Shown: piece by piece, positions 3,001-64,000 of the stretch | How the letters are laid out: each line of letters begins with the position of its first letter | How positions within the stretch are numbered: the stretch's first letter is position 1 | DNA from: Macrostomum lignano | Taxonomy: Eukaryota | Assembly: GCA_002269645.1 (NCBI GenBank) | Contig: NIVC01002267.1 | Coordinates: forward strand, 62,001 to 126,000 | Length of the DNA: 64,000 nucleotides | Reading direction: 5' to 3' | Notes under the pieces: model-generated | Told to the model about the DNA's origin: nothing | The model's database searches: none | What the model saw: only the letters and a program-made list of their open reading frames with translations | Made by a program: the position numbers and the translations under genes

Positions 3001-6000
3001 TCCCCAGCATTTTCAGTCCCAGCAAATCCCGAAAAATTGAAATCCCGCTGAATGGTGGGCAATTTTAAGTCCTGAGATTGGAATTCCAGGTGTTTGCTCT
3101 CAAATCCCGGTCCCGGTATTGGAATCTCTAGCTGGTGGAGCGCTGTCTGTTTCAAATTCACATGTCAGCCGCCTGGATTTTATCACCTCGATCTGCTCAA
3201 CCACCGAACGACAAATCCAGTAAATAAGCCATGGAGTCCTATATGGTGCATGTCGGGGACCCCACGACATTTTATAATCTGGCCCTTACATAGAGTATGA
3301 GTATGCAGAGCATTTTCTAAAAACATCGCCTTGTGCATGTGGCGACGGGCAGCTGGCTTATCTATATAACAAATTTAATGAAATTTAAAGACCTGCTTAT
3401 TAACTCCTCGCTAAAGATCCAGAAAGCAGTGTAAACAAAGTCTGATGTGATTCTTTCTCGCTAATTCTATCCTGGACCCCTATATCTCAATTCCCAGTCT
3501 TCGATAAAATGTCCATAAAATCTGTCTGGATTTCATTCTCTCTGGGTCTGGGTCTGGGTCTGGGTCTCTCATTCTCTCTTCTCTTTCTGATTGGCTGCAG
3601 GCACCCCACCCCTTTAGCCTCCTTCTTGTCTTGCGTGCCCCTCATTCCTTTGATCGCGCCTCCTAACCCAACCCCTCTCTTTGCCCACCCCTCCTTTCTC
3701 TCAACCCCCTGTTATCTCCTATAATATATAAATACACTGCCCTTCCTTACTGCTTAGTGTATTCAACTTTAGTCTGGTCAAGTTAGACTGCGACAACTCT
3801 ACATATATAAAGTGAATTTCAAGACAACGTTAATAACAAGCAGACCACATGGAAGCAGCTCCTCCCATCGCTGTGCGCTTTAGTGCAACAATTCGTGGGA
3901 AGCGCAAAGCAGCCTGCGAAGGCTACTACTTTACACTTGAAAGAACTAGCCTGGTCGACGAAGAGGTGTCATTTTGGCAGTGTGAAGAACGGCGCTTGGG
4001 ATCATGTCCTGCTCGAATCCACATCCGGAATGGCTTTAAAGTGCGACAGCTGAATGACCACAATCACGGACCTGACGGCTCTCGATTCCAAGTTCTTGAG
4101 GCTCTTCGGGAGATTAAATCGGATGCCAGGAACACCGTGAATTCGACGGCAAATATCGTCATGGAACACACAAATGGGCTGTCTGAGTGTGCAGGCATAG
4201 CCCTTCCATCTCAAAGCGCATTAAAGCGGCAAGTTCAAGATGTTCGTCAAACGCACCAAGGTCTTCCAGTACAGCCGCTCAACCGAGCCGAGCTCATTAT
4301 ACCTGAAGAATTTCAATTCAACAACGGAGCACTGTTTCTGCTGCATGACTCCGGACAGGACAACAATCGAATTTTAATCTTCGGTAGCGAGGATAACATT
4401 CAAGCCCTGCAATTGGCGACAGATTTCTTCTCGGACGGCACATTCGATGCCTCGCCGCCACTGTTCGCTCAACTGGTGACAGTGCATGCCGAACTTCAAG
4501 GCTTCATAAGACCACTCATCTACGCATTGCTACCCAACAAGACCGAAGCAACGTACTGTCGATTTTACGAGGCTCTGCATCAATTGGCGCCGAACATGAG
4601 GCCACTTCGCTGGATGTCAGATTTTGAGCGAGCTAACATGAATGCTGTTCAGCATGTCTTTGGCATCGAGTCAACAGGCTGTCTATTTCACTTCGTTCAG
4701 TGCGTGTACAGAAGAGCAGTTGCTGAGGGATTAAAGCGTCAGATTGAAGAAGAAGATGGCGAGATGTCCGTCTGGCTGCGTTGCCTTTCTGCTTTGGCCT
4801 TTGTGCCTATTAATAGTGTTCCAGCAGCATTTGATGAGTTAATAATGCTGCCTGACTTTCCTGCGGAGATGGCTTCAACAGCAGACTATTTTGAAGCCCA
4901 GTGGGTCGGCCATCGACTTCCTGGCGGAGGAAGACGGCAGCCTCGATTCTCACCTTCAATTTGGAATGTTCGTGAGCGAACTTTGAATGGACTTCATCGC
5001 ACGAACAACGCAGTTGAAGCCTGGCATAGGAGGTTCCAGTCAATTCTGGGTTGCAGCAATCCGAATGTTTTTCGGCTCATGAAGGACCTCAAAAAGGAAG
5101 TCGAACACCAGGCACTGCTGATGCAGCGAGCCAACGCTGGTGAAGCACCGAAGGAGCGGAAGAGATACGTGCAGAGCAACGCGATGCTTCTTCGCGTCAC
5201 GCAGCGTTGGAACGTCGAAGGTGGCGGTCTGCCTGCTGACTTTCCTTTGCGTTCCTACCTGAGGGGCATCGCTCACCATTTGAAGAAGTGATCTGATTGA
5301 CAACGGTAGCTATCCTTACAATTTTGGTTTCTTGCTGCACTACACTAAGAAGCAATAAATTTAATATTCTGTGCTCTAGTTTCATTGTGGCCTATATAAT
5401 AATAGTTCCCGCTTCCATGGGATTCGCAAAGGCATTCACTTTGTGCACTTTAAACCCTCGTATTTAGCACTGCGGTTGCTTCTAGTTTCTGAAATTTGGT
5501 TAGGTCAGAGAAGTTCAGTGAACCCACAGTCTTCTGCCTACATAACAACTCACCCCTCCTCCCCATTCCCTTCCCTTCCTCTTGTAGGTTGCCATTGTAA
5601 CTGTATCACTGAATGCTTTTGTTGCCATGTACTCCGTCATCCACCTGTTCCTGTCTTGCGATGCACAGTAAATGTTAACAATTGGTCAATCATTTTCATA
5701 TTGTTTTCATTATTGCTCAATCAAAAGTTATCGTTAAGCGAATGCAAAGTGAAAAATGCAGTAGAGTACAAAGTTGTTTTAAGTAATTGAACCCAAGGAC
5801 TTGATTGAAAGGGAATGAATAGGGAAGGATCAAATGGATGTGCTGGCGCTGCACATCGGAAGATTTGCTCCTTTGGGGTGCTAAATTCCGTTAATGTGTG
5901 AGCTAAGTAGAGTGAAAATTGCTAATTTACCTACTGCAATTCATTTTCGCTTGTATTATGCATGCATAGTGATTGTACAATCGCTGTTGAACCTGTTAAT

Positions 6001-7216
6001 TCGCAATTAATGCCAATGATACCTACAGCCTCACCATCTTTTGACTTGCGACGCTTAAATACCTTGTTCTACTTTTTGCCAAGTGAATGTACAAAAATAG
6101 CTATTGTATTGTGCGGTTCTGTCAAGGGAAAAATAAAGTCATTACCTTATTAAAATATGCGACAAGCTATGTGAGCTGCTCCACCAGCAAAAAATTGCTG
6201 CCACAAAAGATTATAGAACAGGCTACACTCTACAGTAATTTAGCAGAAAGGAAATTTGAGGTGTCTGCGGAATGCCAAAGAAATATCTTATGCATTTGCG
6301 GCAGTAAGAGTTTCAGATTCACACGGTTGAAATCTGGCAGGTAAATAATTTCGATAAGTATAAGTCGATTTTTGCAAGATTAAAACTGCATTGCGGGAAA
6401 ATCTCTGCGGGCAAATCTCTGCGGGCAAATCTCTGCGGGCAAATCTCGACGGGAAAATCTCTGCGGGCAAATCTCGACGGGAAAATCTCTGCGGGCAAAT
6501 CTCGACGGGCAAATCTCGACGGGCAAATCTCGACGGGCAAATCTCGACGGGCAAATCTCCTGCGGGCAGAATGCACTGCGGGCAAATCTCTGCGGGCAAA
6601 CCTCGGCGGGCAAATCTCGACGGGCAAATCTCCTGCGGGCAAATCTCGGCGGGCAGTTCGCCTGCGGGCAAGTCTCATGGACCCAGTAAAGTTGTCTTGC
6701 TCAAGGACACACAATTTGTTTCAAGTGGATCGAGAATCGAACCTCCGACCTTTCAATCGTAAGACCAACGCTCTAAGCAACTAGGCTGCAACCTTCCCAT
6801 CATAAGAAGAATCTATCAACTCACAAAGACACAACAAAATGACTAGCCAAGTGCTCTGTGAGCCTTTGCAAATTATTGGCATCGTCCATGTACAACGGGC
6901 CCTTCTTTTGACCGTCGTCCAAATGAAAGGAAATGCTCGGCGCCCCTTTGCTAGGAGTTTTTATCGCTGTAAAGCCTTTCAAGCAGTGCAGTTCAAATTC
7001 GAACGAGTAGGTCTCCAGAGCTGGCTGAGATCGGCTGACTGCGGCACTGCCAGCGCTGGACGCCTGCGTGGCCAGTTGTACAGGCGTCAAGTAGATGTAC
7101 AACTCCCTGTTGGCAGCCTCCCGACCAATTCTTAGATCAGCATCTACTCTTATTGGTGGTTGATATTGTCTGTCCAACAGGTGGACACCCTGTGGCAGGT
7201 AGAATAGCGTCTCCAT
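1..7216 (-). CDS. TBC1D15: TBC1D15/TBC1D17-like Rab7 GTPase-activating protein, multi-exon, 3' end outside the window
   Basis: Exons 7216-6825, 1544-981, 796-379 and 221-<1 join in phase with GT/AG sites (TT|gtgagt, cacgcag|G, AG|gtttgt, ttacag|C, CAG|gtataa, cccacag|GAC). The peptide has TBC-domain hallmarks IFRGG..LRKTLWKYLL, LIEKDVFRTDR, YVQGMSDLLSP, EVDAFWCF and MYFCFRWILVWFKREF, plus the DPYTT and GFEV segments recalled from TBC1D15/17. Confidence 0.92.
1665..2190. repeat. Intronic minisatellite, ~40-bp unit (TGATGATTCTCCGGGGTTTnnAATGATTTTGAAGAGTTTT)
   Basis: About 12 tandem, slightly divergent copies visible in TBC1D15 intron 1. Confidence 0.9.
2405..6684 (+). mobile_element. Mutator-superfamily (Phantom/MULE-type) DNA transposon with ~500-bp TIRs and a 9-bp TSD
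   Basis: TIRs 2405-2914 and 6182-6684 are near-perfect reverse complements carrying tandem 15-bp GAGATTTGCCCGTC/CA subterminal units. Termini read GGGAGCACGAGAC and GGGTCCATGAGAC. The identical 9-mer AGTAAAGTT flanks both sides (2396-2404, 6685-6693). A transposase ORF lies inside. Confidence 0.93.
3849..5291 (+). CDS. MULE DDE transposase with N-terminal FLYWCH zinc finger, 480 aa, intronless
   Basis: FLYWCH-like GYYF...FWQC...CPARI...HNH. MULE core FFSDGTF, PLIYALLPNKTEATY, MSDFERA, GCLFHFVQ and RTNNAVEAWHRRF. TATATAAA lies upstream (~3804) and AATAAA downstream (~5353). Confidence 0.93.
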   Translation: MEAAPPIAVRFSATIRGKRKAACEGYYFTLERTSLVDEEVSFWQCEERRLGSCPARIHIRNGFKVRQLNDHNHGPDGSRFQVLEALREIKSDARNTVNSTANIVMEHTNGLSECAGIALPSQSALKRQVQDVRQTHQGLPVQPLNRAELIIPEEFQFNNGALFLLHDSGQDNNRILIFGSEDNIQALQLATDFFSDGTFDASPPLFAQLVTVHAELQGFIRPLIYALLPNKTEATYCRFYEALHQLAPNMRPLRWMSDFERANMNAVQHVFGIESTGCLFHFVQCVYRRAVAEGLKRQIEEEDGEMSVWLRCLSALAFVPINSVPAAFDELIMLPDFPAEMASTADYFEAQWVGHRLPGGGRRQPRFSPSIWNVRERTLNGLHRTNNAVEAWHRRFQSILGCSNPNVFRLMKDLKKEVEHQALLMQRANAGEAPKERKRYVQSNAMLLRVTQRWNVEGGGLPADFPLRSYLRGIAHHLKK

Positions 7217-19254: not shown

Positions 19255-20300
19255 TAATCTAGGATCAGTTGGATGAGATTTTGAATCTACGATCTGATTC
19301 GTGAAACTTTGAATCTAGGATCTGATTCGTTAGACTTTGAATCTAGGATCTGATTCGTGAAACTTTGAATCTAGGATCTGATTCGTTAGACTTTGAATCT
19401 AGGATCTGATTGAAGAGATTTTGAATCTAGGATCTGATTCGTGAGACCTTGAATCTAGAATCTGATTCGTGAGACTTTAAATCTAGGATCTGATTCGTGA
19501 GACCTTGAATCTAGGATCTGATTCGTGAGACCTTGAATCTAGGATCTGATTCGTGAGACCTTGAATCTAGAATCTGATTCGTGAGACTTTAAATCTAGGA
19601 TCTGATTCGTGAGACCTTGAATCTAGAATCTGATTCGTGAGACCTTGAATCTAGGATCTGATTCGTGAGACCTTGAATCTAGAATCTGATTCGTGAGACC
19701 TTGAATCTAGGATCTGAAGGGTGAGATTTTGTATCTAGGATCTGAAGGGTGAGATTTTGAATCTAGAATCTGATTCGTGAGACCTTGAATCTAGGATCTG
19801 ATTCGTGAGACCTTGAATCTAGGATCTGATTCGTGAGACCTTGAATCTAGGATCTGATTCGTGAGACCTTGAATCTAGGATCTGATTCGTGAGACCTTGA
19901 ATCTAGGATCTGATTCGTGAGACCTTGAATCTAGGATCTGATTCGTGAGACCTTGAATCTAGGATCTGATTCGTGAGACCTTGAATCTAGGATCTGATTC
20001 GTGAGACCTTGAATCTAGGATCTGAAGGGTGAGATTTTGTATCTAGGATCTGAAGGGTGAGATTTTGAATCTAGGATCTAAAGGGTGAGATTTTTTATCT
20101 AGGAACTAATTGATTAGATTTCGAATCTAGGATCTAAAGGGTGAGATTTTGAATCTAGGATCTAAAGGGTGAGATTTTTTATCTAGGAACTAATTGATTA
20201 GATTTCGAATCTAGGATCTAAAGGGTGAGATTTTGAATCCAGTATCTAATTGATGTGATTTTTTTAATCTAGGATCTGAAAGGTGAGATTTTGAATCGAA
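19255..20300. repeat. Minisatellite, 28-bp unit GAATCTAGGATCTGATTCGTGAGACCTT
   Basis: More than 30 tandem copies just downstream of the ATF7IP stop codon, degenerating at both ends. Confidence 0.95.
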
Positions 20301-38032: not shown

Positions 38033-39478
<1,446 letters not shown>

Positions 39479-40887: not shown

Positions 40888-47316
<6,429 letters not shown>

Positions 47317-52950: not shown

Positions 52951-53029
52951 TCCTATTTCTTAAAGTATGTTGTCTTTAGGCCGGTCACAAAAAATTGACC
53001 ACCAGCATTCGTATTTTCTAATAATACAA

Positions 53030-55170
53030 CATGTCTCACTCTCTCCCACTGTCTCACTCTCTCCCACTGTCTCACTCTCTCCCACTGTCTCACTCTCTCC
53101 CACTGTCTCACTCTCTCCCACTGTCTCACTCTCTCCCACTGTCTCACTCTCACACTGTCTCACTCTCTCACACTGTCTCACTCTCACACTGTCTCACTCT
53201 CTCCCACTGTCTCACTCTCTCACACTGTCTCACTCTCTCCCACTGTCTCACTCTCTCCCACTGTCTCACTCTCTCCCACTGTCTCACTCTCTCCCACTGT
53301 CTCACTCTCACACTGTCTCACTCTCTCACACTGTCTCACTCTCACACTGTCTCACTCTCTCCCACTGTCTCACTCTCTCACACTGTCTCACTCTCTCCCA
53401 CTGTCTCACTCTCTCACACTGTCTCACTCTCTCCCACTGTCTCACTCTCTCACACTGTCTCACTCTCTCACACTGTCTCACTCTCTCCCACTGTCTCACT
53501 CTCTCCCACTGTCTCACTCTCTCACACTGTCTCACTCTCTCCCACTGTCTCACTCTCTCACACTGTCTCACTCTCTCCCACTGTCTCACTCTCTCACACT
53601 GTCTCACTCTCTCCCACTGTCTCACTCTCTCCCACTGTCTAACTCTCTCCCACTGTCTCACTCTCTCCCACTGTCTCACTCTCTCACTGTCTCACTCTCT
53701 CCCACTGTCTCACTCTCTCCCACTGTCTCACTCTCTCCCACTGTCTCACTCTCTCCCACTGTCTCACTCTCTCCCACTGTCTCACTCTCTCCCACTGTCT
53801 CACTCTCTCCCACTGTCTCACTCTCTCCCACTGTCTCACTCTCTCACACTGTCTCACTCTCTCCCACTGTCTCACTCTCTTCCACTGTCTCACTCTCACA
53901 CTGTCTCACTCTCACACTGTCTCACTCTCTCCCACTGTCTCACTCTCACACTGTCTCACTCTCTCCCACTGTCTCACTCTCTCACACTGTCTCACTCTCT
54001 CCCACTGTCTCACTCTCTCCCACTGTCTCACTCTCTCCCACTGTCTCACTCTCTCACACTGTCTCACTCTCTCACTGTCTCACTCTCTCCTGCTGTCTCA
54101 CTCTCTCCCACTGTCTCACTCTCTCACACTGTCTCACTCTCTCACACTGTCTCACTCTCTCCCACTGTCTCACTCTCTCACACTGTCTCACTCTCTCCCA
54201 CTGTCTCACTCTCTCCCACTGTCTCACTCTCTCCCACTGTCTCACTCTCTCACACTGTCTCACTCTCTCCCACTGTCTCACTCTCTCCTACTGTCTCACT
54301 CTCTCCCACTGTCTCACTCTCTCACTGTCTCACTCTCTCCCACTGTCTCACTCTCTCCCACTGTCTCACTCTCTCCCACTGTCTCACTCTCTCCCACTGT
54401 CTCACTCTCTCCCACTGTCTCACTCTCTCCCACTGTCTCACTCTCTCACACTGTCTCACTCTCTCCCACTGTCTCACTCTCTTCCACTGTCTCACTCTCA
54501 CACTGTCTCACTCTCACACTGTCTCACTCTCTCCCACTGTCTCACTCTCACACTGTCTCACTCTCACACTGTCTCACTCTCTCCCACTGTCTCACTCTCT
54601 CACACTGTCTCACTCTCTCCCACTGTCTCACTCTCTCCCACTGTCTCACTCTCTCCCACTGTCTCACTCTCTCACACTGTCTCACTCTCTCACTGTCTCA
54701 CTCTCTCCTGCTGTCTCACTCTCTCCCACTGTCTCACTCTCTCACACTGTCTCACTCTCTCACACTGTCTCACTCTCTCCCACTGTCTCACTCTCTCACA
54801 CTGTCTCACTCTCTCCCACTGTCTCACTCTCTCCCACTGTCTCACTCTCTCCCACTGTCTCACTCTCTCACACTGTCTCACTCTCTCCTACTGTCTCACT
54901 CTCTCCCACTGTCTCACTCTCTCCTGCTGTCTGTCACTCTCCCTCACTGTCTGTCATTCTCTCCCACTGTCACTTCCACTGTTTGTCATTAGCTCCCACT
55001 GTCTGTCACTCTCTTCCACTGTCTGTTATTCTCTCCCACTGTCTGTCACTCTCTCCCACAAACACTTTCACTGTCTGTCACTCTCTCCCACTGTCACTTC
55101 CATTGTCTGTCACTCTTCCACTGACTGTTATTCTCTCCCACTGTCTGTCACTATTCCTCACTGTCTGTCA
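53030..55170. repeat. 18-bp minisatellite ACTGTCTCACTCTCTCCC with 16-bp variants
   Basis: More than 100 copies, degenerating after ~54930. Rare variants (TTCCACTG, TCCTGCTG) recur about 600 bp apart. Confidence 0.97.
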
Positions 55171-55461
55171 CTCTCCCTCTCTATTCCCTAGCGTTTCCCA
55201 ATCTAAGTTTAGCTGTTTCTGTGTTAAAATGCAAAACTGAAGTTTCGAAGCCAGGAAAATGAAATTTGGCTTTTATTAGAAAGGAAAAATCCTCATAGCC
55301 GAGCAGCTGATTTTGTCAGTTGCATTTCACGCAGATTTGCTTGCTTGGAGTTTTAAGGCTTACAAAAAAATGAAGATGGTATTTATCTCATAGGAAGACA
55401 AAGAAGAGCAGCTGGCAGTCCAGCCTTGCAGAGAGAGTTCGGATTCAATTGAGCCCATCCA

Positions 55462-56370: not shown

Positions 56371-56624
56371 GTAGACGGTCTCTTACTGCAGACTCAATGG
56401 TTGGAACGAGGTCAAGAGACCATTGATTCAGTGCAAAGTCAGCCCCGGGTAGGGGACGAGACGCGTTTACTGCCCGACGAGACTGTCTATGGTAAATACT
56501 CACTGTCTGCTGTTTTACTGTTCTAAGTACAACCTTGCTTGGATAGAAGCCGCACAGATGCTAGAATAACTATAAAAATGTCACTTGCAATCAATGCGTT
56601 TATTTACTTTTTCTACACCAAGAG

Positions 56625-57536
56625 ACAAGGGCGCCCACTAAGAGACAGGGGCGCCCACCCAAGAGACAGGAGCGCCCATCAAGAAACGGGAGCGCCCACC
56701 CAGAGACGGGGGCGCCCACCCAAGAGACAGGGGCGCCCACCACGAGACAAGGGCGCCCACTAAGAGACAGGGGCGCCCACCCAAGAGACAGGGGCGCCCA
56801 CCCAAGAGACAGGGGCGCCCATCAAGAAACGGGAGCGCCCACCCAGAGACGGGGGCGCCCACCCAAGAGACAGGGGCGCCCACCACGAGACAAGGGCGCC
56901 CACTAAGAGACAGGGGCGCCCACCCAAGAGACAGGGGCGCCCACCCAAGAGACAGGGGCGCCCATCAAGAAACGGGAGTGTCCATCAAGAAACGGGGCGC
57001 CCACCCAAGAGACAGGGGCGCCCACCAAGAGACAGGGGCGCCCACCAAGAGACAGGAGCGCCCACCCAAGAGACAGGAGCGCCCATCAAGAAACGGGAGC
57101 GCCCACCAAGAGACAGGGGCGCCCACCCAAGAGACAGGGGCGCCCACCCAAGAGACAGGGGCGCCCACCAAGAGACAAGGGCGCCCACTAAGAGACAGGG
57201 GCGCCCACCCAAGAGACAGGGGCGCCCATCAAGAAACGGGAGTGTCCATCAAGAAACGGGGCGCCCACCCAAGAGACAGGGGCGCCCACCCAAGAGACAG
57301 GGGCGCCCACCCAAGAGACAGGGGCGCCCACCCAAGAGACAGGGGCGCCCATCAAGAAACGGGGCGCCCACCCAAGAGACAGGGGCGCCCACCAAGAGAC
57401 AGGGGCGCCCACCAAGAGACAGGAGCGCCCACCCAAGAGACAGGAGCGCCCATCAAGAAACGGGAGCGCCCACCAAGAGACAGGGGCGCCCACCCAAGAG
57501 ACAGGGGCGCCCACCAAGAGACAGGGGCGCCCACCA
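56625..57536. repeat. 20/21-bp GC-rich minisatellite CCCAAGAGACAGGGGCGCCCA
   Basis: More than 40 copies; it explains ORFs 56539-57547. Confidence 0.96.
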
Positions 57537-58206
57537 ATACAAGCTAGACAGAGACAGCTTCTTTCTTTTAGAGTCGTCCTCCTACATCTACGTTCTCTAG
57601 CACCTTTTGATTTGCATTTGGCAATTTTTTCAATACAATATATAATTTAAATTCTAATCCAAAAAAATCGATGAATTAAGCAGAGTTCGATACAATCAGT
57701 GTACCCATCCGATGGCCTCTAAATATCGAGAGTATATATATTTTGCATTACATATGTTTGCATCATAAATAGACTTCTTAAAAGTATAATTAATCGTTAG
57801 CTCATGAAAAGGCACTTATCTCTGTGCGATCACTTTTTGCAAAATAGAGAATTTGGTAATTATTCATCAAAAGGCGGTTTTCGTGGAATTAGCAACAGTT
57901 AAAATTGGAAAAAGTAAAAATTATTGGCCTTTAAAAAATAGATCATATTTGCTACTACGAGTGCACATCTGCAGTACCACAAATCTAACTTCATGGATAG
58001 ATCTATTTATTAAAAACTTTCATGTGCTACTGTTCATTTATTCACAGTATTTTTTTCGCCCGCAGATACTAGAATAGCTATAAATGTGTCAATCGAAAAA
58101 TGCGCTTATCTACTATTTTTACATTAGAGAAAGGCCAGCCCTTTAGCCAGGCCGATCGATAAACAGTTTGGTTTTCCTCTTGCCCGCTTGTGTCTAAATT
58201 TGAACT

Positions 58207-59125: not shown

Positions 59126-59464
59126 CTGGTTGTTTTGACAGAGTTTTTAACTAATTGATTGCATGTCCAGTTCCTGCTGACTCCTGAACACACGCAAGAG
59201 CGTCAATACTGTACTCAGGCACGCACTCAGGCACACGTTCAAAATTATTTTGAACAACTAACTAAAAAATTAAAGTGTTTAAGAATTTTGACAAATAAAA
59301 TTAAAGAACTATGGAAATATTACAATTACAGCATAATTACATTACTTGATTAACTGCAATTACCTCGATAGTTTCGTTGCCTTGTTTCTTAGCATCGTTT
59401 ACCATTGCTTGGAGCTGCTTCTGCAAAGAAAAAATCATGTGATATTTTCTTCAATGAGTGGTCA

Positions 59465-59663
59465 AGGCGTCAAGAGCCCCAAAATTGGCCATAGATTTGT
59501 ATTGATCAGGAGCCCCAAATCAAGCATTGATTTCGTATAAGGCAATTAGAGCCCCAAATCTAACCGTTGATTTCGTATTAGTCAAACCAACTATAGATTT
59601 TGTAGTGCAGGTCGAGAGCCCCAACTTGACGATAGATTTCGTATTAGTTAAGAGCCCCAAATC
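59465..59663. repeat. Degenerate host repeat (TGATTTCGTATTAGTCAAGAGCCCCAAAT-like, about 5 copies) directly 5' of the retrotransposon
   Basis: AGAGCCCCAAA(T) recurs at ~59476, 59509, 59549, 59615 and 59651. Confidence 0.75.
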
Positions 59664-59664
59664 G

Positions 59665-59918
59665 GCACGCGAAGGTGTATTCAGCACGCCAGTGAAGTAT
59701 GAGACAGACCAGGCCTAAGGGCTACGGTCTGCGATGCTTCACGCCTGCCCCTATATTCAGCAGGTCAAGGCTGGAGAGGGAGGTCTGCACCCGCTATTTG
59801 CCACTGGCAGCCGCAGACCCCCCCCCCCCTCACGCTGTTTCACAAGTCGACCCAGGGTACTCGTCCCCGCGTGTGTTCAAGGCAGACCCTAGGGCTGCTG
59901 GACAGACTGGGCTCCGAC
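59665..59918 (+). ncRNA. HDV-like self-cleaving ribozyme with a long structured J1/2, at the retrotransposon 5' end
   Basis: P1: GCACGCG 59665-71 / CGCGTGT 59868-74 (7 bp, G.U at the cut site). P2: GTCG-A-CCCA 59846-54 / TGGG-CTC-CGAC 59908-18. P3: GGG 59855-57 / CCC 59865-67. L3: TACTCGT. P1.1: A59859-T59876 and C59860-G59875. P4: hairpin 59877-59902. J4/2: CAGAC with candidate catalytic C59903. Confidence 0.8.
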
Positions 59919-60139
59919 GCTGGCGACCCATCCAGTGGCTTCGGCCGAATTTGGGTATGCGGGTCTGGCTTGCCAGCCTGCAGGCCGTGGTACTGCTTAA
60001 CGTACCCCCTAATGCCTAAGGTGTTTGACCGTGCCGATGGGCTGGAAGGCCGGGGGGTTGTCCGGTCGCTAGCGGTCCTTTTCTTTTTCTTCTTTCCTCT
60101 TTCTTTTGTGACTCAGCTCACTCCTTCCCGCTTTCAGCT

Positions 60140-61606
60140 ATGGCGTCATCCGCCTCTTTAACCCCCGCTGAAGCCGGGGCCCCGGCAACTCCGGCCGGTG
60201 ACTCTGGCACCAGCGCCGCCCCACCGGGGGCAGATGGGCTTGCCGCCGGCTCGGCTGGTGACATGCCCGCACGCGCAACCGGGCCCTCCGCTGAAGCCCG
60301 ACGCACCCGCAACCAACGCCGCAACGAGCGGCGACGGCGACTACGGGGTACTGCGGGCCGGCCACCGGCGGAGGGGGAACCTAGGGAGGGCGAGGCTGCT
60401 GTTGGGCCGAAAGGAACCACAGCAACCCCTGCCCCCCAGGATACAACCCCCGCTGGTGAGCCACCCAGTATACCTGCTACAAGCGCGGCCGGGCCTTCGG
60501 GAACCGCCGCCACCAACTACGCCTCAAAGGTCAAGCTCCAACCGGCGGTCATCGTCTTCGGGGAAGAGCAGGACCTCACGGCCGACGAGCTCGACAGTGC
60601 CTGGCGCACCATCGATGCTGCGCTCATCGACCAGCTCCTGGCGGGCCGCCCTGTGAGCGTGGTCAAGTCTGCCAAGACCGACGGCTGCATCTTCATCTGG
60701 TGCAGCTCGGAGGAGAGCAGCCGCAATCTACGCGAGCTTCTGCCAAAGCTGAACTGGCCCAAGAAGCTCGGCAAGCTCGTCTTCGCCAGCGAGGGCGAAC
60801 GACAGAAGACCCAGCGCTTTCGCGTCTGGATCCCGGCCGGCAGTGCCATTAAGTCCGGAGATCAGCTTAGGCAAATATTGCTAAAGCTGCACCCCGACCT
60901 TAAGGTCAACGGGCTCCTACACCACGCCACTTCCCGCAAGGAGAAGGGGGCTACGGTGATCCTAGGGCTCTCTGATGACTGGGCTAAGCGCTTGCCGCTT
61001 AAGTCCACAATTCATATTGGTCTGACTCAGCTGACCATCCTCCGTTGCGAGGAGCGGAAAGCTGATGAAGCCAAGAATGCCAAAGCTTCCGAAACCGGAA
61101 CTGGGGCCCAGGCTCCTCCGGCAAAGAAGCCGAGGCAAACGGCCGATCCTATGCCCGGTAAGGCAGTTCGCGCTGCTGAAACCGGAAATCGCAATCGCAG
61201 ACCCGCCAGGAGCACCCGGAGGTCCGGCCTGATCCAGCGCGCGCTGGACCAGGCCAAGAACCTTCGTGCGCATCGTGAGCGGGCCCGCGCTTCTCGCGCT
61301 CCACCCCAACAGCCAGAAGGCCAGACTCTAAGCGGGGAGGCTCCGACCGACTGGTTCGAGTCTGTGACTCACCAGGAGGCTGGCGCCACCCGCATCGACC
61401 TGACCGACGAGGCAGAGGGGACGGGCAGTGACAGCACCGAAGCACGCAGGAGAGGCGACGGTAACGTCCACGCTGGGCTCACGTCCGCGGAGGACTCCAC
61501 AGCCACCCTAACTGCTGAGGACGCTGAAACTCCCATGGAGGTCTGCGGGTCACCCACCACTGAAAAGGAGGAGGATGACCTGCTCAACGATTCCCCAACT
61601 GCGTGA
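60140..61606 (+). CDS. Retrotransposon ORF1 (gag-like nucleic-acid chaperone), 488 aa
   Basis: Ala/Pro/Arg-rich N-terminus, a central folded domain (FRVWIP..LRQILLKLHPDL..GATVILGL..IHIGLTQL) resembling DUF4780-type ORF1s of Loa-like elements (from recall), and an acidic C-terminus. No CCHC knuckle seen. Confidence 0.85.
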   Translation: MASSASLTPAEAGAPATPAGDSGTSAAPPGADGLAAGSAGDMPARATGPSAEARRTRNQRRNERRRRLRGTAGRPPAEGEPREGEAAVGPKGTTATPAPQDTTPAGEPPSIPATSAAGPSGTAATNYASKVKLQPAVIVFGEEQDLTADELDSAWRTIDAALIDQLLAGRPVSVVKSAKTDGCIFIWCSSEESSRNLRELLPKLNWPKKLGKLVFASEGERQKTQRFRVWIPAGSAIKSGDQLRQILLKLHPDLKVNGLLHHATSRKEKGATVILGLSDDWAKRLPLKSTIHIGLTQLTILRCEERKADEAKNAKASETGTGAQAPPAKKPRQTADPMPGKAVRAAETGNRNRRPARSTRRSGLIQRALDQAKNLRAHRERARASRAPPQQPEGQTLSGEAPTDWFESVTHQEAGATRIDLTDEAEGTGSDSTEARRRGDGNVHAGLTSAEDSTATLTAEDAETPMEVCGSPTTEKEEDDLLNDSPTA

Positions 61607-61608
61607 TA

Positions 61609-64000
61609 ATGATCAGCAACCAGGGAATCCATTGCCTGCAGATTAATCTGCAGCACTGCGTCGCAGCCTCGGTCAACCTTATGCGTTACGCCGAGCTCGA
61701 CAAGCCGGGGCTCATCCTCGTCCAGGAACCCTGGACTCTCAGAGGTAAGCCTCAAAACGCCCCTGCTGGCTACAATTGTTTTTATACTTACCCTCGCGAG
61801 GCCAACCAGCCTCCCAGAGCTTGCATCTTTGCGAGCAAAACGCTCAGTGCGTGGCTCAGATCGGACCTGTCCAACAGGGACATCTGCGTCATCCAATCCG
61901 AGGACCTTCTTCCTGGGAAGACCACCCTCATTGCCTCGGTTTACCTACCAGGCGATGCTGCGGTCGTCCCCAGAGCCCTCGCTACGCTGGTAGAGCTCTG
62001 CTCTGCCAAAAACTACGAGCTCATGGTTGCCGGCGACATCAACGCCCACCACACTCACTGGGGCAGCACTGGCATTAATCAGAGAGGCGAAGACCTCCTA
62101 GCCTACGTTGCCTCTACGACCCTCGAGTTCTGCAACTCTGGGTCCACCCCTACCTTTGACAACGGACGGTGGTCGGAGGTGATCGACGCTACGCTCGCAA
62201 CGCCCAGACTCTACCAGAGTATTGGGGCGTGGCGGGTGCTTCCAGTGTCCTCACTATCGGATCACAAGTTCATCTCCTTCAACCTAATGGCCGCGCGTAG
62301 CGCAACTCGTGTTATGTGGAGACGGAACGCCAGAAATACGGATTGGGAAACCTTCGGGCTCGCCCTGAAGGAATTCCATCGGTCTCCTGGCCAACCATCC
62401 ACGATCACGTCGTGCCGAGAGGCGGATGAGTGCGCGACTGTTTTGACAGAGACGCTAACCGCCGCCTTTGAGGCGTCCTGCCCTTTAAAAGCCTATAAAG
62501 GGAAAAAATCGGCGCCGTGGTGGAATCCCGAGCTCGGCAACCTCCGTCGCAGGGCTAAGAGACTCCACCGCAGAGCAACTAAAACTAAGAGCCCTGCAGA
62601 CCAAACCGCCTATCATGAAGCAATTCATGAGTTTAAAAGGCAGGTTAGGAATGCAAAGGCTCAAAAATGGCGACAATACTGTGAGGAGCTAGAGGGCTCA
62701 CGCCCCACCTCCAGAGTTGTGAAAGCGCTCACGCTGGACAAAATGTCTAAGCTCTCCTCGGTCAAACGCACCGACGGTACGTCCACGGACAACCCAGGGG
62801 AAACGCTTGATGTAATGCTCACTGCGTTTTTCCCTAACGAGCCAGCTAACCAGACCACTCCGGATCACTCGGAGGGAGGTCACGCGCTGGCTGCATCTAT
62901 CATCACGGAGGACCGCATTGTGAGAGCGGCAAATTCCTTCAAGCCTTTCAAAGCCCCAGGACCCGACGGCATTGTACCGGCCCTTCTAAGAGAGGCGGTT
63001 AAATGCCCAGGCTTCCTGCGCAAACTTTGCAGCCTTCTTCGGGCATGCATCACGCTTGGTTATGTCCCGCAGGCATGGACCGAGGCAAAGGTGATCTTTA
63101 TCCCTAAGCCAGGCCGCCCGGACTACCATTCTATCAAATCCTTCAGACCGATCAGCTTGACCTCCTCCCTGGTCAAGCTGATGGAGAGACTGGTGCTTTG
63201 GCGCCTTCTCTCTGTTGAGCTGAAGAACAAACCTCTCAGCGAGAACCAGCACGCTTTTCGGGCGGGTCGCTCCACTGAAAGCGCGCTGCACGTCCTGGTC
63301 GATAAACTCGAGAAGGCCGTGCTTGGTAGTGGCTTTGCTCTGGGGATCTTCCTGGACATCATTGGCGCCTTCGATAACGTCCTCTTTGAGGCGTTCCGAA
63401 GAGCTCTTTGTGAGAGGCTAACGCACTCACATCTCACCAGATGGATCATGTACATGATCAGCCATCGCACGGCCACCGCCAGTCTGCTGGGCTACCAGAG
63501 GACGGTCCCCGTCTGCAAAGGTAGCCCGCAAGGTGGGGTGCTGTCTCCAGTTCTCTGGAATATGGTCATCGATGAGCTCCTCCGGGATGTTCGGCCTGAC
63601 CCCATTCTGAAAGTTGGATATGCGGACGATGTCACCGCGGTGGCATCTGGTCCGTCCCCTGATACCCTCAGGGACCTTCTTCAGAACTTCATCTACGCTG
63701 CTGAGCAATGGGCGGACCGCTGTGGTTTAAGGCTCTCTGAGACTAAGACCGCAGCGATCATGTTCACCAGCAGGACCAAGTGGCAGATTCGGCCGCTCAC
63801 GCTTTACGGAAGGGAAATCCCCTTCTGCAAGCAGACTAAATGTCTGGGTATTACCCTGGACCACAGGCTGAACTGGTCTCCCCACGTTCAAACAAAAGCC
63901 AAAAAGGCCTTCGCAGTCCTCGCGCAATTGCGCAGGGCCGTCGGCACCACCTGGGGGCTCACCCCAAGCGCCTCTGGTGGATCTACACTGCAATGGTTAG
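61609..64000 (+). CDS. Retrotransposon ORF2: AP endonuclease plus reverse transcriptase (absent from the ORF track because it runs off the window)
   Basis: Hand translation from ATG 61609 is open to the window end. APE motifs QINLQH, LVQEPW, SVYLP, GDINAHHTHWGS and SDH. RT motifs KAPGPDGI, FRPISLTS, QHAFRAGRST, FLDIIGAFD, GSPQGGVLSP, GYADD and CLGITLD. An apparent 1-nt frameshift lies at ~63962-63966. Confidence 0.95.
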   Translation, partial: MISNQGIHCLQINLQHCVAASVNLMRYAELDKPGLILVQEPWTLRGKPQNAPAGYNCFYTYPREANQPPRACIFASKTLSAWLRSDLSNRDICVIQSEDLLPGKTTLIASVYLPGDAAVVPRALATLVELCSAKNYELMVAGDINAHHTHWGSTGINQRGEDLLAYVASTTLEFCNSGSTPTFDNGRWSEVIDATLATPRLYQSIGAWRVLPVSSLSDHKFISFNLMAARSATRVMWRRNARNTDWETFGLALKEFHRSPGQPSTITSCREADECATVLTETLTAAFEASCPLKAYKGKKSAPWWNPELGNLRRRAKRLHRRATKTKSPADQTAYHEAIHEFKRQVRNAKAQKWRQYCEELEGSRPTSRVVKALTLDKMSKLSSVKRTDGTSTDNPGETLDVMLTAFFPNEPANQTTPDHSEGGHALAASIITEDRIVRAANSFKPFKAPGPDGIVPALLREAVKCPGFLRKLCSLLRACITLGYVPQAWTEAKVIFIPKPGRPDYHSIKSFRPISLTSSLVKLMERLVLWRLLSVELKNKPLSENQHAFRAGRSTESALHVLVDKLEKAVLGSGFALGIFLDIIGAFDNVLFEAFRRALCERLTHSHLTRWIMYMISHRTATASLLGYQRTVPVCKGSPQGGVLSPVLWNMVIDELLRDVRPDPILKVGYADDVTAVASGPSPDTLRDLLQNFIYAAEQWADRCGLRLSETKTAAIMFTSRTKWQIRPLTLYGREIPFCKQTKCLGITLDHRLNWSPHVQTKAKKAFAVLAQLRRAVGTTWGLTPSASGGSTLQWL

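Follow-up and report, generated by a model that had tools for sequence, protein, structure and literature searches.

Processing of the 5′ end by HDV-like ribozymes is known from R2, R4, Dong, RTE, Baggins and L1Tc, and the cleavage site of such a ribozyme is defined by a P1 helix abutting P3, a U and a G in L3, a P1.1 and a J4/2 cytosine occurring in combination (PMC3774820). L1TcRz lies within the first 77 nt of L1Tc (PMC3774820; PMC3185411); in silkmoths the J1/2 loops run from 216 to 498 nt, and the separation between P1 and P1′ in R2 ranges from 23 to more than 700 nt (PMC3774820). In large HDV-like ribozymes, structured J1/2 domains (P1.2) activate the RNA by joining P1 and P2 (PMC4908430), and for drz-Agam-2 of Anopheles gambiae the peripheral domain speeds cleavage nearly 1,000-fold (Webb et al. 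2016, PMC4908430).

The locus considered here lies in a 64,000-nt stretch of Macrostomum lignano contig NIVC01002267.1, referred to throughout as the window. Judged from the sequence and its relatives, it is likely that 59665-59918 on the + strand encodes an HDV-like self-cleaving ribozyme with which, over 254 nt, the RNA of a non-LTR retrotransposon of the APE/RT type begins. The 5′ part of this element starts at 59665 on the + strand and continues to the last base of the window, as follows.

59464 to 59664, + strand: flanking DNA made of five imperfect tandem repeats of 36-40 nt, GAGCCCCAAATC...GATTTCGTAT
59665 to 59918, + strand: predicted ribozyme, whole, first 254 nt of the element
475 nt from 59665, + strand: 5′ UTR of the element, preceding ORF1
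59919 to 60139, + strand: rest of the 5′ UTR, partly conserved with the relatives L001 and L002
60140 to 61606, + strand: ORF1, 488 aa, intact
61609 (ATG) to 64000, + strand: ORF2, APE endonuclease and reverse transcriptase, open to base 63999 at the window end

The ribozyme thus sits directly upstream of ORF1 and ORF2 and on the same strand, and the element, with both reading frames open, is probably active; no further copies of it were found within the 64-kb window. ORF2 matches Exo_endo_phos_2 (the APE domain; 5e-20) and RVT_1 (the RT domain; 4e-31), and the best solved-structure match of the endonuclease is TRAS1 of the R1 clade (E = 1.5e-13). An RNase H is found in relatives of ORF2, and the window stops before that region. 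For ORF1, the match to DUF4780 is below threshold (E = 0.023) and a Zn-knuckle match in Pfam was not obtained; a clear DUF4780 is present in the ORF1 of more distant relatives. Among named proteins, gene models of Macrostomum lignano come nearest, with 73% identity over 34% of the query. The combination of APE, RT and RNase H is common to the I, LOA, ingi, Tad and Nimb clades, and the domain set of the element would fit several of these (I, LOA and others), which leaves the “Loa-like” of the initial annotation as one candidate label; the outgroups in the supplement of the R2 paper, Baggins1 and L1Tc only, are too few to tell the clades apart.

G59665 is the first base of the element as well as of P1. 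The element truncates the last flanking repeat unit after GAGCCCCAAATCG, and the 200 nt upstream of 59665 have a GC content of 0.42 as compared with 0.62 for the ribozyme, so that the predicted cut site does fall where the initial annotation had put it, at the junction of host repeat and element. The flank itself (59464 to 59664) has no similarity to L001 or L002. The core of the predicted ribozyme reads, in order:

59665 to 59671, + strand: 5′ strand of P1, GCACGCG, 7 bp with 59868-74, predicted cut directly 5′ of G59665
59672 to 59845, + strand: J1/2, 174 nt, predicted four-way junction
59846 to 59854, + strand: 5′ strand of P2, GUCG A CCCA, pairing with 59908-18
59855 to 59867, + strand: P3 and L3, GGG 59855-57 with CCC 59865-67, L3 UACUCGU at 59858-64
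59868 to 59874, + strand: 3′ strand of P1, CGCGUGU, directly 3′ of P3
59875 to 59876, + strand: J1/4, forming P1.1 with A59859 and C59860 of L3
59877 to 59902, + strand: P4 hairpin, from the pair table and also in the unconstrained MFE fold
59903 to 59907, + strand: J4/2, CAGAC, C59903 being the predicted catalytic cytosine
59908 to 59918, + strand: 3′ strand of P2, UGGG CUC CGAC, the 3′ end of the ribozyme

Checked base by base, each of the elements that had been paired by hand (P1, P3, L3, P1.1, P4 and P2) is present where it had been placed, and the pair tables give a nested double pseudoknot in the canonical order P1, P1.1, P2, P3, P4. Both in the window and in L002, P1 has 6-7 bp with its 3′ strand directly 3′ of P3. 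The first P1 pair in the window is the wobble G59665.U59874; P1.1 has 2 bp (A59859-U59876 and C59860-G59875), and P2 is a helix of 4+4 bp with a bulge, 59846-49 and 59851-54 pairing with 59908-11 and 59915-18. Positions 1 and 6 of L3, a U and a G, are those of the reverse wobble, as in the L3 G/U pair described for HDV-like ribozymes (PMC3774820).

A hand-paired HDV motif in 64 kb of DNA is, in itself, weak evidence. We searched with a strict descriptor (requiring 7 bp in P1 with an initial G, 3 Watson-Crick pairs in P3, 2 bp in P1.1, closure of P4, CNRA in J4/2, and both inner and outer P2), and this yields 0.73 chance loci per composition-matched simulated 64-kb window and, in the real window, 4 further loci besides the candidate; looser descriptors give dozens of matches in GC-rich UTRs, the same UTR included. 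From these numbers alone it could be argued that a degenerate motif has been matched by accident in GC-rich DNA and that the locus has no function, and only the comparative evidence described below decides the matter. Searches with HDV models, which the initial annotation had proposed, were of no help: no HDV-family match in Rfam was obtained at the gathering score in the whole window, or even at E ≤ 10 in the 801 nt from 59400 to 60200. Such an outcome is expected for a ribozyme with a 174-nt insert and pseudoknotted pairs, and it means that the Rfam models miss split ribozymes of this kind. The models without a match include those of HDV, CPEB3 and drz-Agam, the last with RF01787 and RF01788. 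As for the repeats of the window, about 25 minisatellite arrays lie between 1671 and 58355, with periods of 14-53 nt and up to 120 copies (for example 19256-20297, 41195-42626, 43213-45248, 53032-55059 and 56616-57537), and GC skew is extreme in some of them. Spurious matches to the HDV descriptor arise from the 28-nt array at 19256-20297, and a 757-aa “ORF” at 52967-55240 is an artefact of an 18-nt repeat.

The comparators were two sequences with 62-63% protein identity to the window element. L001 is a JGI metagenome contig whose ORF1 (P0001) has 62% identity across the 77% of ORF1 that aligns, and L002 is a Logan contig (ERR14788467_472973, 6492 nt) with ORF1 and ORF2 intact and an ORF2 that is 63% identical. 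When the pseudoknotted structure of the window was mapped onto the alignment of the three sequences, 87.2% of the cells were paired, compared with 39-45% when the partners were slid by 1-3 columns; the structure came from the window sequence, and the window's own paired cells are therefore inflated in this figure. Pairs changed on both sides numbered 20, versus 1-6 in the slid controls, and the observed values for pairing and covariation were reached in none of 500 shuffles. The compensatory changes are spread over the fold, with 2 pairs in P1, 5 in P1.2 (the helix closing J1/2), 5 in J1/2 hairpins A and B, 2 in P2 and 2 in P1.1, the P1 and P1.2 counts being from two sequences only, since L001 lacks the 5′ part; P4 covaries too in the three-sequence comparison. 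Covariation at the paired positions, which the initial annotation had proposed to look for among other genomic copies, is seen in these two relatives.

Taken helix by helix, P1 is GCACGCG/CGCGUGU in the window and GCCUGC/GCAGGC (6 bp) in L002, where the first pair is G1-C194, so that the G.U is found in the window only. Outer P2 is GUCG/CGAC in the window versus GCCG/CGGC, and inner P2 reads CCCA/UGGG versus CCCAAA/UUUGGG versus CUCAGA/UCUGAG. P3 is invariant in all three sequences; L3 is UACUCGU, UUCUCGU and UCUCCGU, keeping U1 and G6. At the same place as the window's P4, L001 has a helix of 8 bp and L002 one of 12 bp. Not every feature of the window is shared. The A-U pair in P1.1, read as a compensatory replacement, is real in the window but is not kept: L002 forms its 2 bp, C-G and U-A, through changes on both sides, and L001 has 1 bp only, the other pair being broken (U/U). 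Likewise the CNRA pattern of J4/2, whose purines correspond to the “constrained A” of R2 ribozymes and which reads CAGA(C) in the window, is absent from L001 (CGUG) and L002 (CUGC), where the purines after the C vary and the aligned C alone is conserved. MAFFT places C59903 in one column with C143 of L001; its counterpart in L002, C228, was assigned by hand from the pairing table of P4 and P2. The longer P4 of L002 is misplaced by MAFFT.

Position provides a second line of evidence. The L002 contig begins exactly at the base aligned to G59665, and the distance from this base to a conserved TATGAGA is 33 nt in both the window and L002, so that P1 stands at the 5′ boundary in two independent sequences and the boundary anticipated by the initial annotation recurs in L002. 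The start of L002 could be an assembly break and not an RNA or element end, but it is not simply the edge of a short contig, because the contig runs about 600 nt past the 3′ end of the element. If the L002 run is RNA-seq, the contig fits a 5′-processed read-through transcript. (Past the stop of ORF2, at 5849-6492, L002 carries ORFs on the opposite strand.) Moreover, from -300 to +190 around it, 59665 is the sole site in the window that pairs fully with the 7-mer 3′ of P3, and nt 1 is the sole site in nt 1-170 of L002 that pairs fully with the strand 3′ of its P3. The chance of such a P1 pairing at a fixed site is about 0.003 in each of the two, and once position and the comparative evidence are added the match is beyond chance. 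Covariation at 62-63% protein identity, the boundary position in two sequences and the uniqueness of the P1 partner thus effectively refute the notion of a chance match, whose probability we would put as next to negligible in spite of the descriptor counts. The core of the earlier reading, that a double pseudoknot of the HDV type, its J1/2 large and structured, defines the 5′ end of a non-LTR retrotransposon, is supported by this covariation in two relatives and by the start of L002.

J1/2 contains the hairpins that had been named in it, all of them in the MFE fold of 59672-59845, and, as a feature that had gone unmentioned, a helix that closes the whole domain:

59675-85 with 59834-43, + strand: P1.2 closing helix, MFE fold
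59692 to 59742, + strand: J1/2 hairpin A
59743 to 59765, + strand: J1/2 hairpin B
59768 to 59830, + strand: J1/2 hairpin C

The fold has z = -3.5, and none of 200 shuffles was as stable. Folded separately, the J1/2 of L002 takes the same architecture (z = -2.8), and pairs changed on both sides make up 5 of 8 in P1.2, 3 of 20 in hairpin A and 2 of 6 in hairpin B. As modeled, then, J1/2 is a conserved four-way junction closed by P1.2, with linkers of 3-4 nt to P1 and 2 nt to P2; it is by an arrangement of this kind that large HDV-like ribozymes are activated (PMC4908430). The nested part of the active topology, before P2, comes to -93.8 kcal/mol in the window and -119.8 kcal/mol in L002, the unconstrained nested MFE being -101 and -130.8 kcal/mol, respectively; by these predicted energies the active topology equals the unconstrained nested MFE in stability. 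On the opposite strand, the complement of hairpin C (59771-59830) gives weak matches to miRNA precursors (several G-rich models, E = 0.3-4), far under the gathering scores, which we take as the noise of a GC-rich hairpin.

The mechanism that we infer from this arrangement, in which catalysis, the role of C59903 and co-transcription with the flanking DNA are the inferred parts, would run as follows. The element would be transcribed within a longer read-through or host transcript; its 5′-terminal heptamer would form P1 with a second heptamer, the one that directly follows the P3/L3 active-site hairpin on the 3′ side; and the 174-nt four-way junction of J1/2, closed by P1.2 and connected by linkers of 2-4 nt, would join P1 and P2. 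With C59903 in J4/2 as general acid/base, the RNA would then cut itself 5′ of G59665. The first base of the released RNA would be the first base of the element, and the ribozyme would for that reason be copied in every retrotransposition. The nucleotide at -1 relative to the predicted cut is G59664; G is the least favourable base at this position in genomic HDV (PMC1874588).

Covariation proves helices and not chemistry, and a conserved 5′ UTR that is structured and non-catalytic, HDV-like in topology by coincidence and serving in protein binding, translation or as a promoter, with the 5′ end set by transcription initiation, would also covary. That the J4/2 purines vary in the relatives, that Rfam returns no match and that the UTR 3′ of the ribozyme is conserved as well are all in keeping with such a UTR, and promoter and ribozyme can overlap, for which L1Tc is the precedent (PMC3383444). 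What a UTR of this kind would leave without reason is the exact pairing of a terminal 6-7-mer with the strand abutting P3, accompanied by the U...G positions of L3, by P1.1 and by the aligned C of J4/2; and a P1 at the very first base in two lineages is hard to explain. We regard a non-catalytic UTR as distinctly unlikely on this account, and the preferred reading remains that of a ribozyme at the 5′ terminus of the element RNA.

A different objection grants the ribozyme but gives it another P1, either the GCACGCC at 59684 or a strand at 59835-44 upstream of P2, in which case cleavage would take place within the element and strip the first 20-170 nt from the processed RNA. The first of these had been offered as an alternative P1 in the initial annotation, and it exists, 59684-89 being able to form 6 bp with 59869-74, but it (59684-90) is not conserved: its counterpart in L002 is TCCGCCG, which is unable to pair. 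In L001, a GCUCGC (76-81) is fully complementary to its own P1′. For the strand upstream of P2 the argument comes from RNAalifold, which finds a helix between the 3′ strand of P1.2 (59835-43) and 59873-75 plus 59880-85, that is, the 3′ end of P1′ and the 5′ strand of P4. This helix is paired in 24 of 27 cells, and 4 of its 9 pairs are changed on both sides, versus 0-1 in slid controls; it spans 59835-59844 with 59872-59885 in the window, J1/4 included, and the homologous positions in L001 and L002. However, at the position of P1 itself the proximal pairing is of only 3-4 bp in the window and L002, and in the window it lacks the 5′ G; compared with the active topology, the alternative state is less stable by 19-40 kcal/mol; and whatever lay 5′ of an internal cut would fail to be passed on, although 59672-59845 shows both conservation and covariation. 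An internal P1 is therefore very improbable. A compact ribozyme with a proximal P1 was also considered and rejected, the complementarity being non-homologous in position and, in the window and L002, of 3-5 bp only.

The alternative helix merits attention apart from any alternative cut, since it excludes the active fold and is excluded by it. In sequence, the 5′ strand of P1.2 is a mimic of P1′ at its 3′ end plus P4 in its 5′ strand, GUGUAUUCAGC versus GUGUUCAAGGCAG in the window and GCAGGGCGC versus GCAGGCAAUGCGC in L002, and because of this mimicry the P1.2 3′ strand can pair with either partner, with covariation in both pairings; the P1.2 5′ strand and the segment it mimics change in parallel between the lineages. 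As a thermodynamic switch the helix was rejected for the same deficit in stability, which leaves it possible only as a kinetic intermediate. It is, in three sequences, a hint. On this hint one might suppose that the ribozyme is not a simple constitutive cutter and that a conserved strand swap times or gates cleavage during transcription, within a peripheral domain conserved as a four-way junction and in a lineage so far unlinked to HDV-like ribozymes, which would probably be a flatworm one whose ORF1 has a DUF4780-like region. We put this forward as a speculation that is more likely wrong than right by a wide measure.

Some further observations concern the relatives. The conserved part of the 5′ UTR 3′ of the ribozyme corresponds to 59919-60139 in the window, 160-520 in L001 and 250-547 in L002, and includes an 18-nt block, GTCCGGTCGCTAGCGGTC (about 60060-77 in the window), that is identical in L001. 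A GGGTACC...GGTACCC stem is common to L001, L002 and L005; the window is without it and has a pyrimidine tract, 60078-60105, instead. This conserved UTR could act in translation control. In L005, a more remote sequence (39% ORF2 identity, ORF1 with a clear DUF4780), an HDV-like core was fitted by hand at 139-350, starting at that sequence's own AT-to-GC boundary. The fit has P1 as G139-C144 with G280-U285 (G.U first), P3 as GCC/GGU, L3 as UGCACGA and P1.1 as GC/GC; uncorroborated and without comparators, it may be chance. L003, L004 and L006 are truncated within ORF1, and L007-L009, which are distant relatives, have no UTR similarity. Searches with ORF1 returned P0001 alone, scans of metagenomes with ORF1 peptide patterns and with a DNA pattern of the ribozyme core gave no match, and no family members were found in viral and prokaryotic genome collections.

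Two other reading frames in the window deserve mention. On the - strand, 38033-39286 is an uninterrupted 417-aa ORF (GC 0.64) with complete Tubulin and Tubulin_C domains, set in otherwise AT-rich, repeat-rich DNA, and may be a tubulin gene without introns or else a retrocopy. On the + strand, the ORF at 3849-5291 (480 aa) combines a FLYWCH zinc finger with a MULE transposase domain; it suggests a Mutator-like DNA transposon or a domesticated copy and points to an animal host.

What has been added, then, is a well-supported predicted ribozyme, apparently uncatalogued, to the set of non-LTR elements that make their 5′ end by self-cleavage, with kin in Macrostomum lignano. In practical terms, it shows precisely where a probably active element has its 5′ end, an aid to annotation, and its conserved J1/2 closed by P1.2 offers a natural test case for the “pinch” model of activation. 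Understanding of such systems is unchanged by it: 5′-terminal HDV-like ribozymes, long J1/2 segments and P1.2 domains are already documented, and this is accordingly an ordinary example of a known process. The closest parallel is R2 of Drosophila, silkmoths and others (PMC3774820), a non-LTR element that likewise has a nested double pseudoknot at its 5′ end, a P1 that abuts P3/L3 and whose 5′ strand defines the RNA's 5′ terminus, a very long J1/2, a variable P4 and J4/2, and a P1 that covaries between species. R2 differs in having a single ORF and a restriction-like endonuclease and in inserting into 28S rDNA, whereas the element here carries ORF1 plus an ORF2 of the APE/RT type and is embedded in a minisatellite-like repeat; in most species the R2 cleavage is inside 28S sequence, whereas here P1 is all element sequence. 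The 5′ ribozymes of Baggins1 (LOA clade, Drosophila) and L1Tc (ingi clade, Trypanosoma) are compact, in contrast to the 254 nt of the present one (PMC3774820; PMC3185411). To the drz-Agam-2 family there is no sequence similarity, and the peripheral domain, a single helix in drz-Agam-2, is here a predicted three-hairpin junction. Silkmoth R2 J1/2 loops share little sequence, while the J1/2 here is conserved as a four-way junction, and it is this conserved four-way-junction peripheral domain, together with the lineage of the host element, that distinguishes the present ribozyme from the systems already described.
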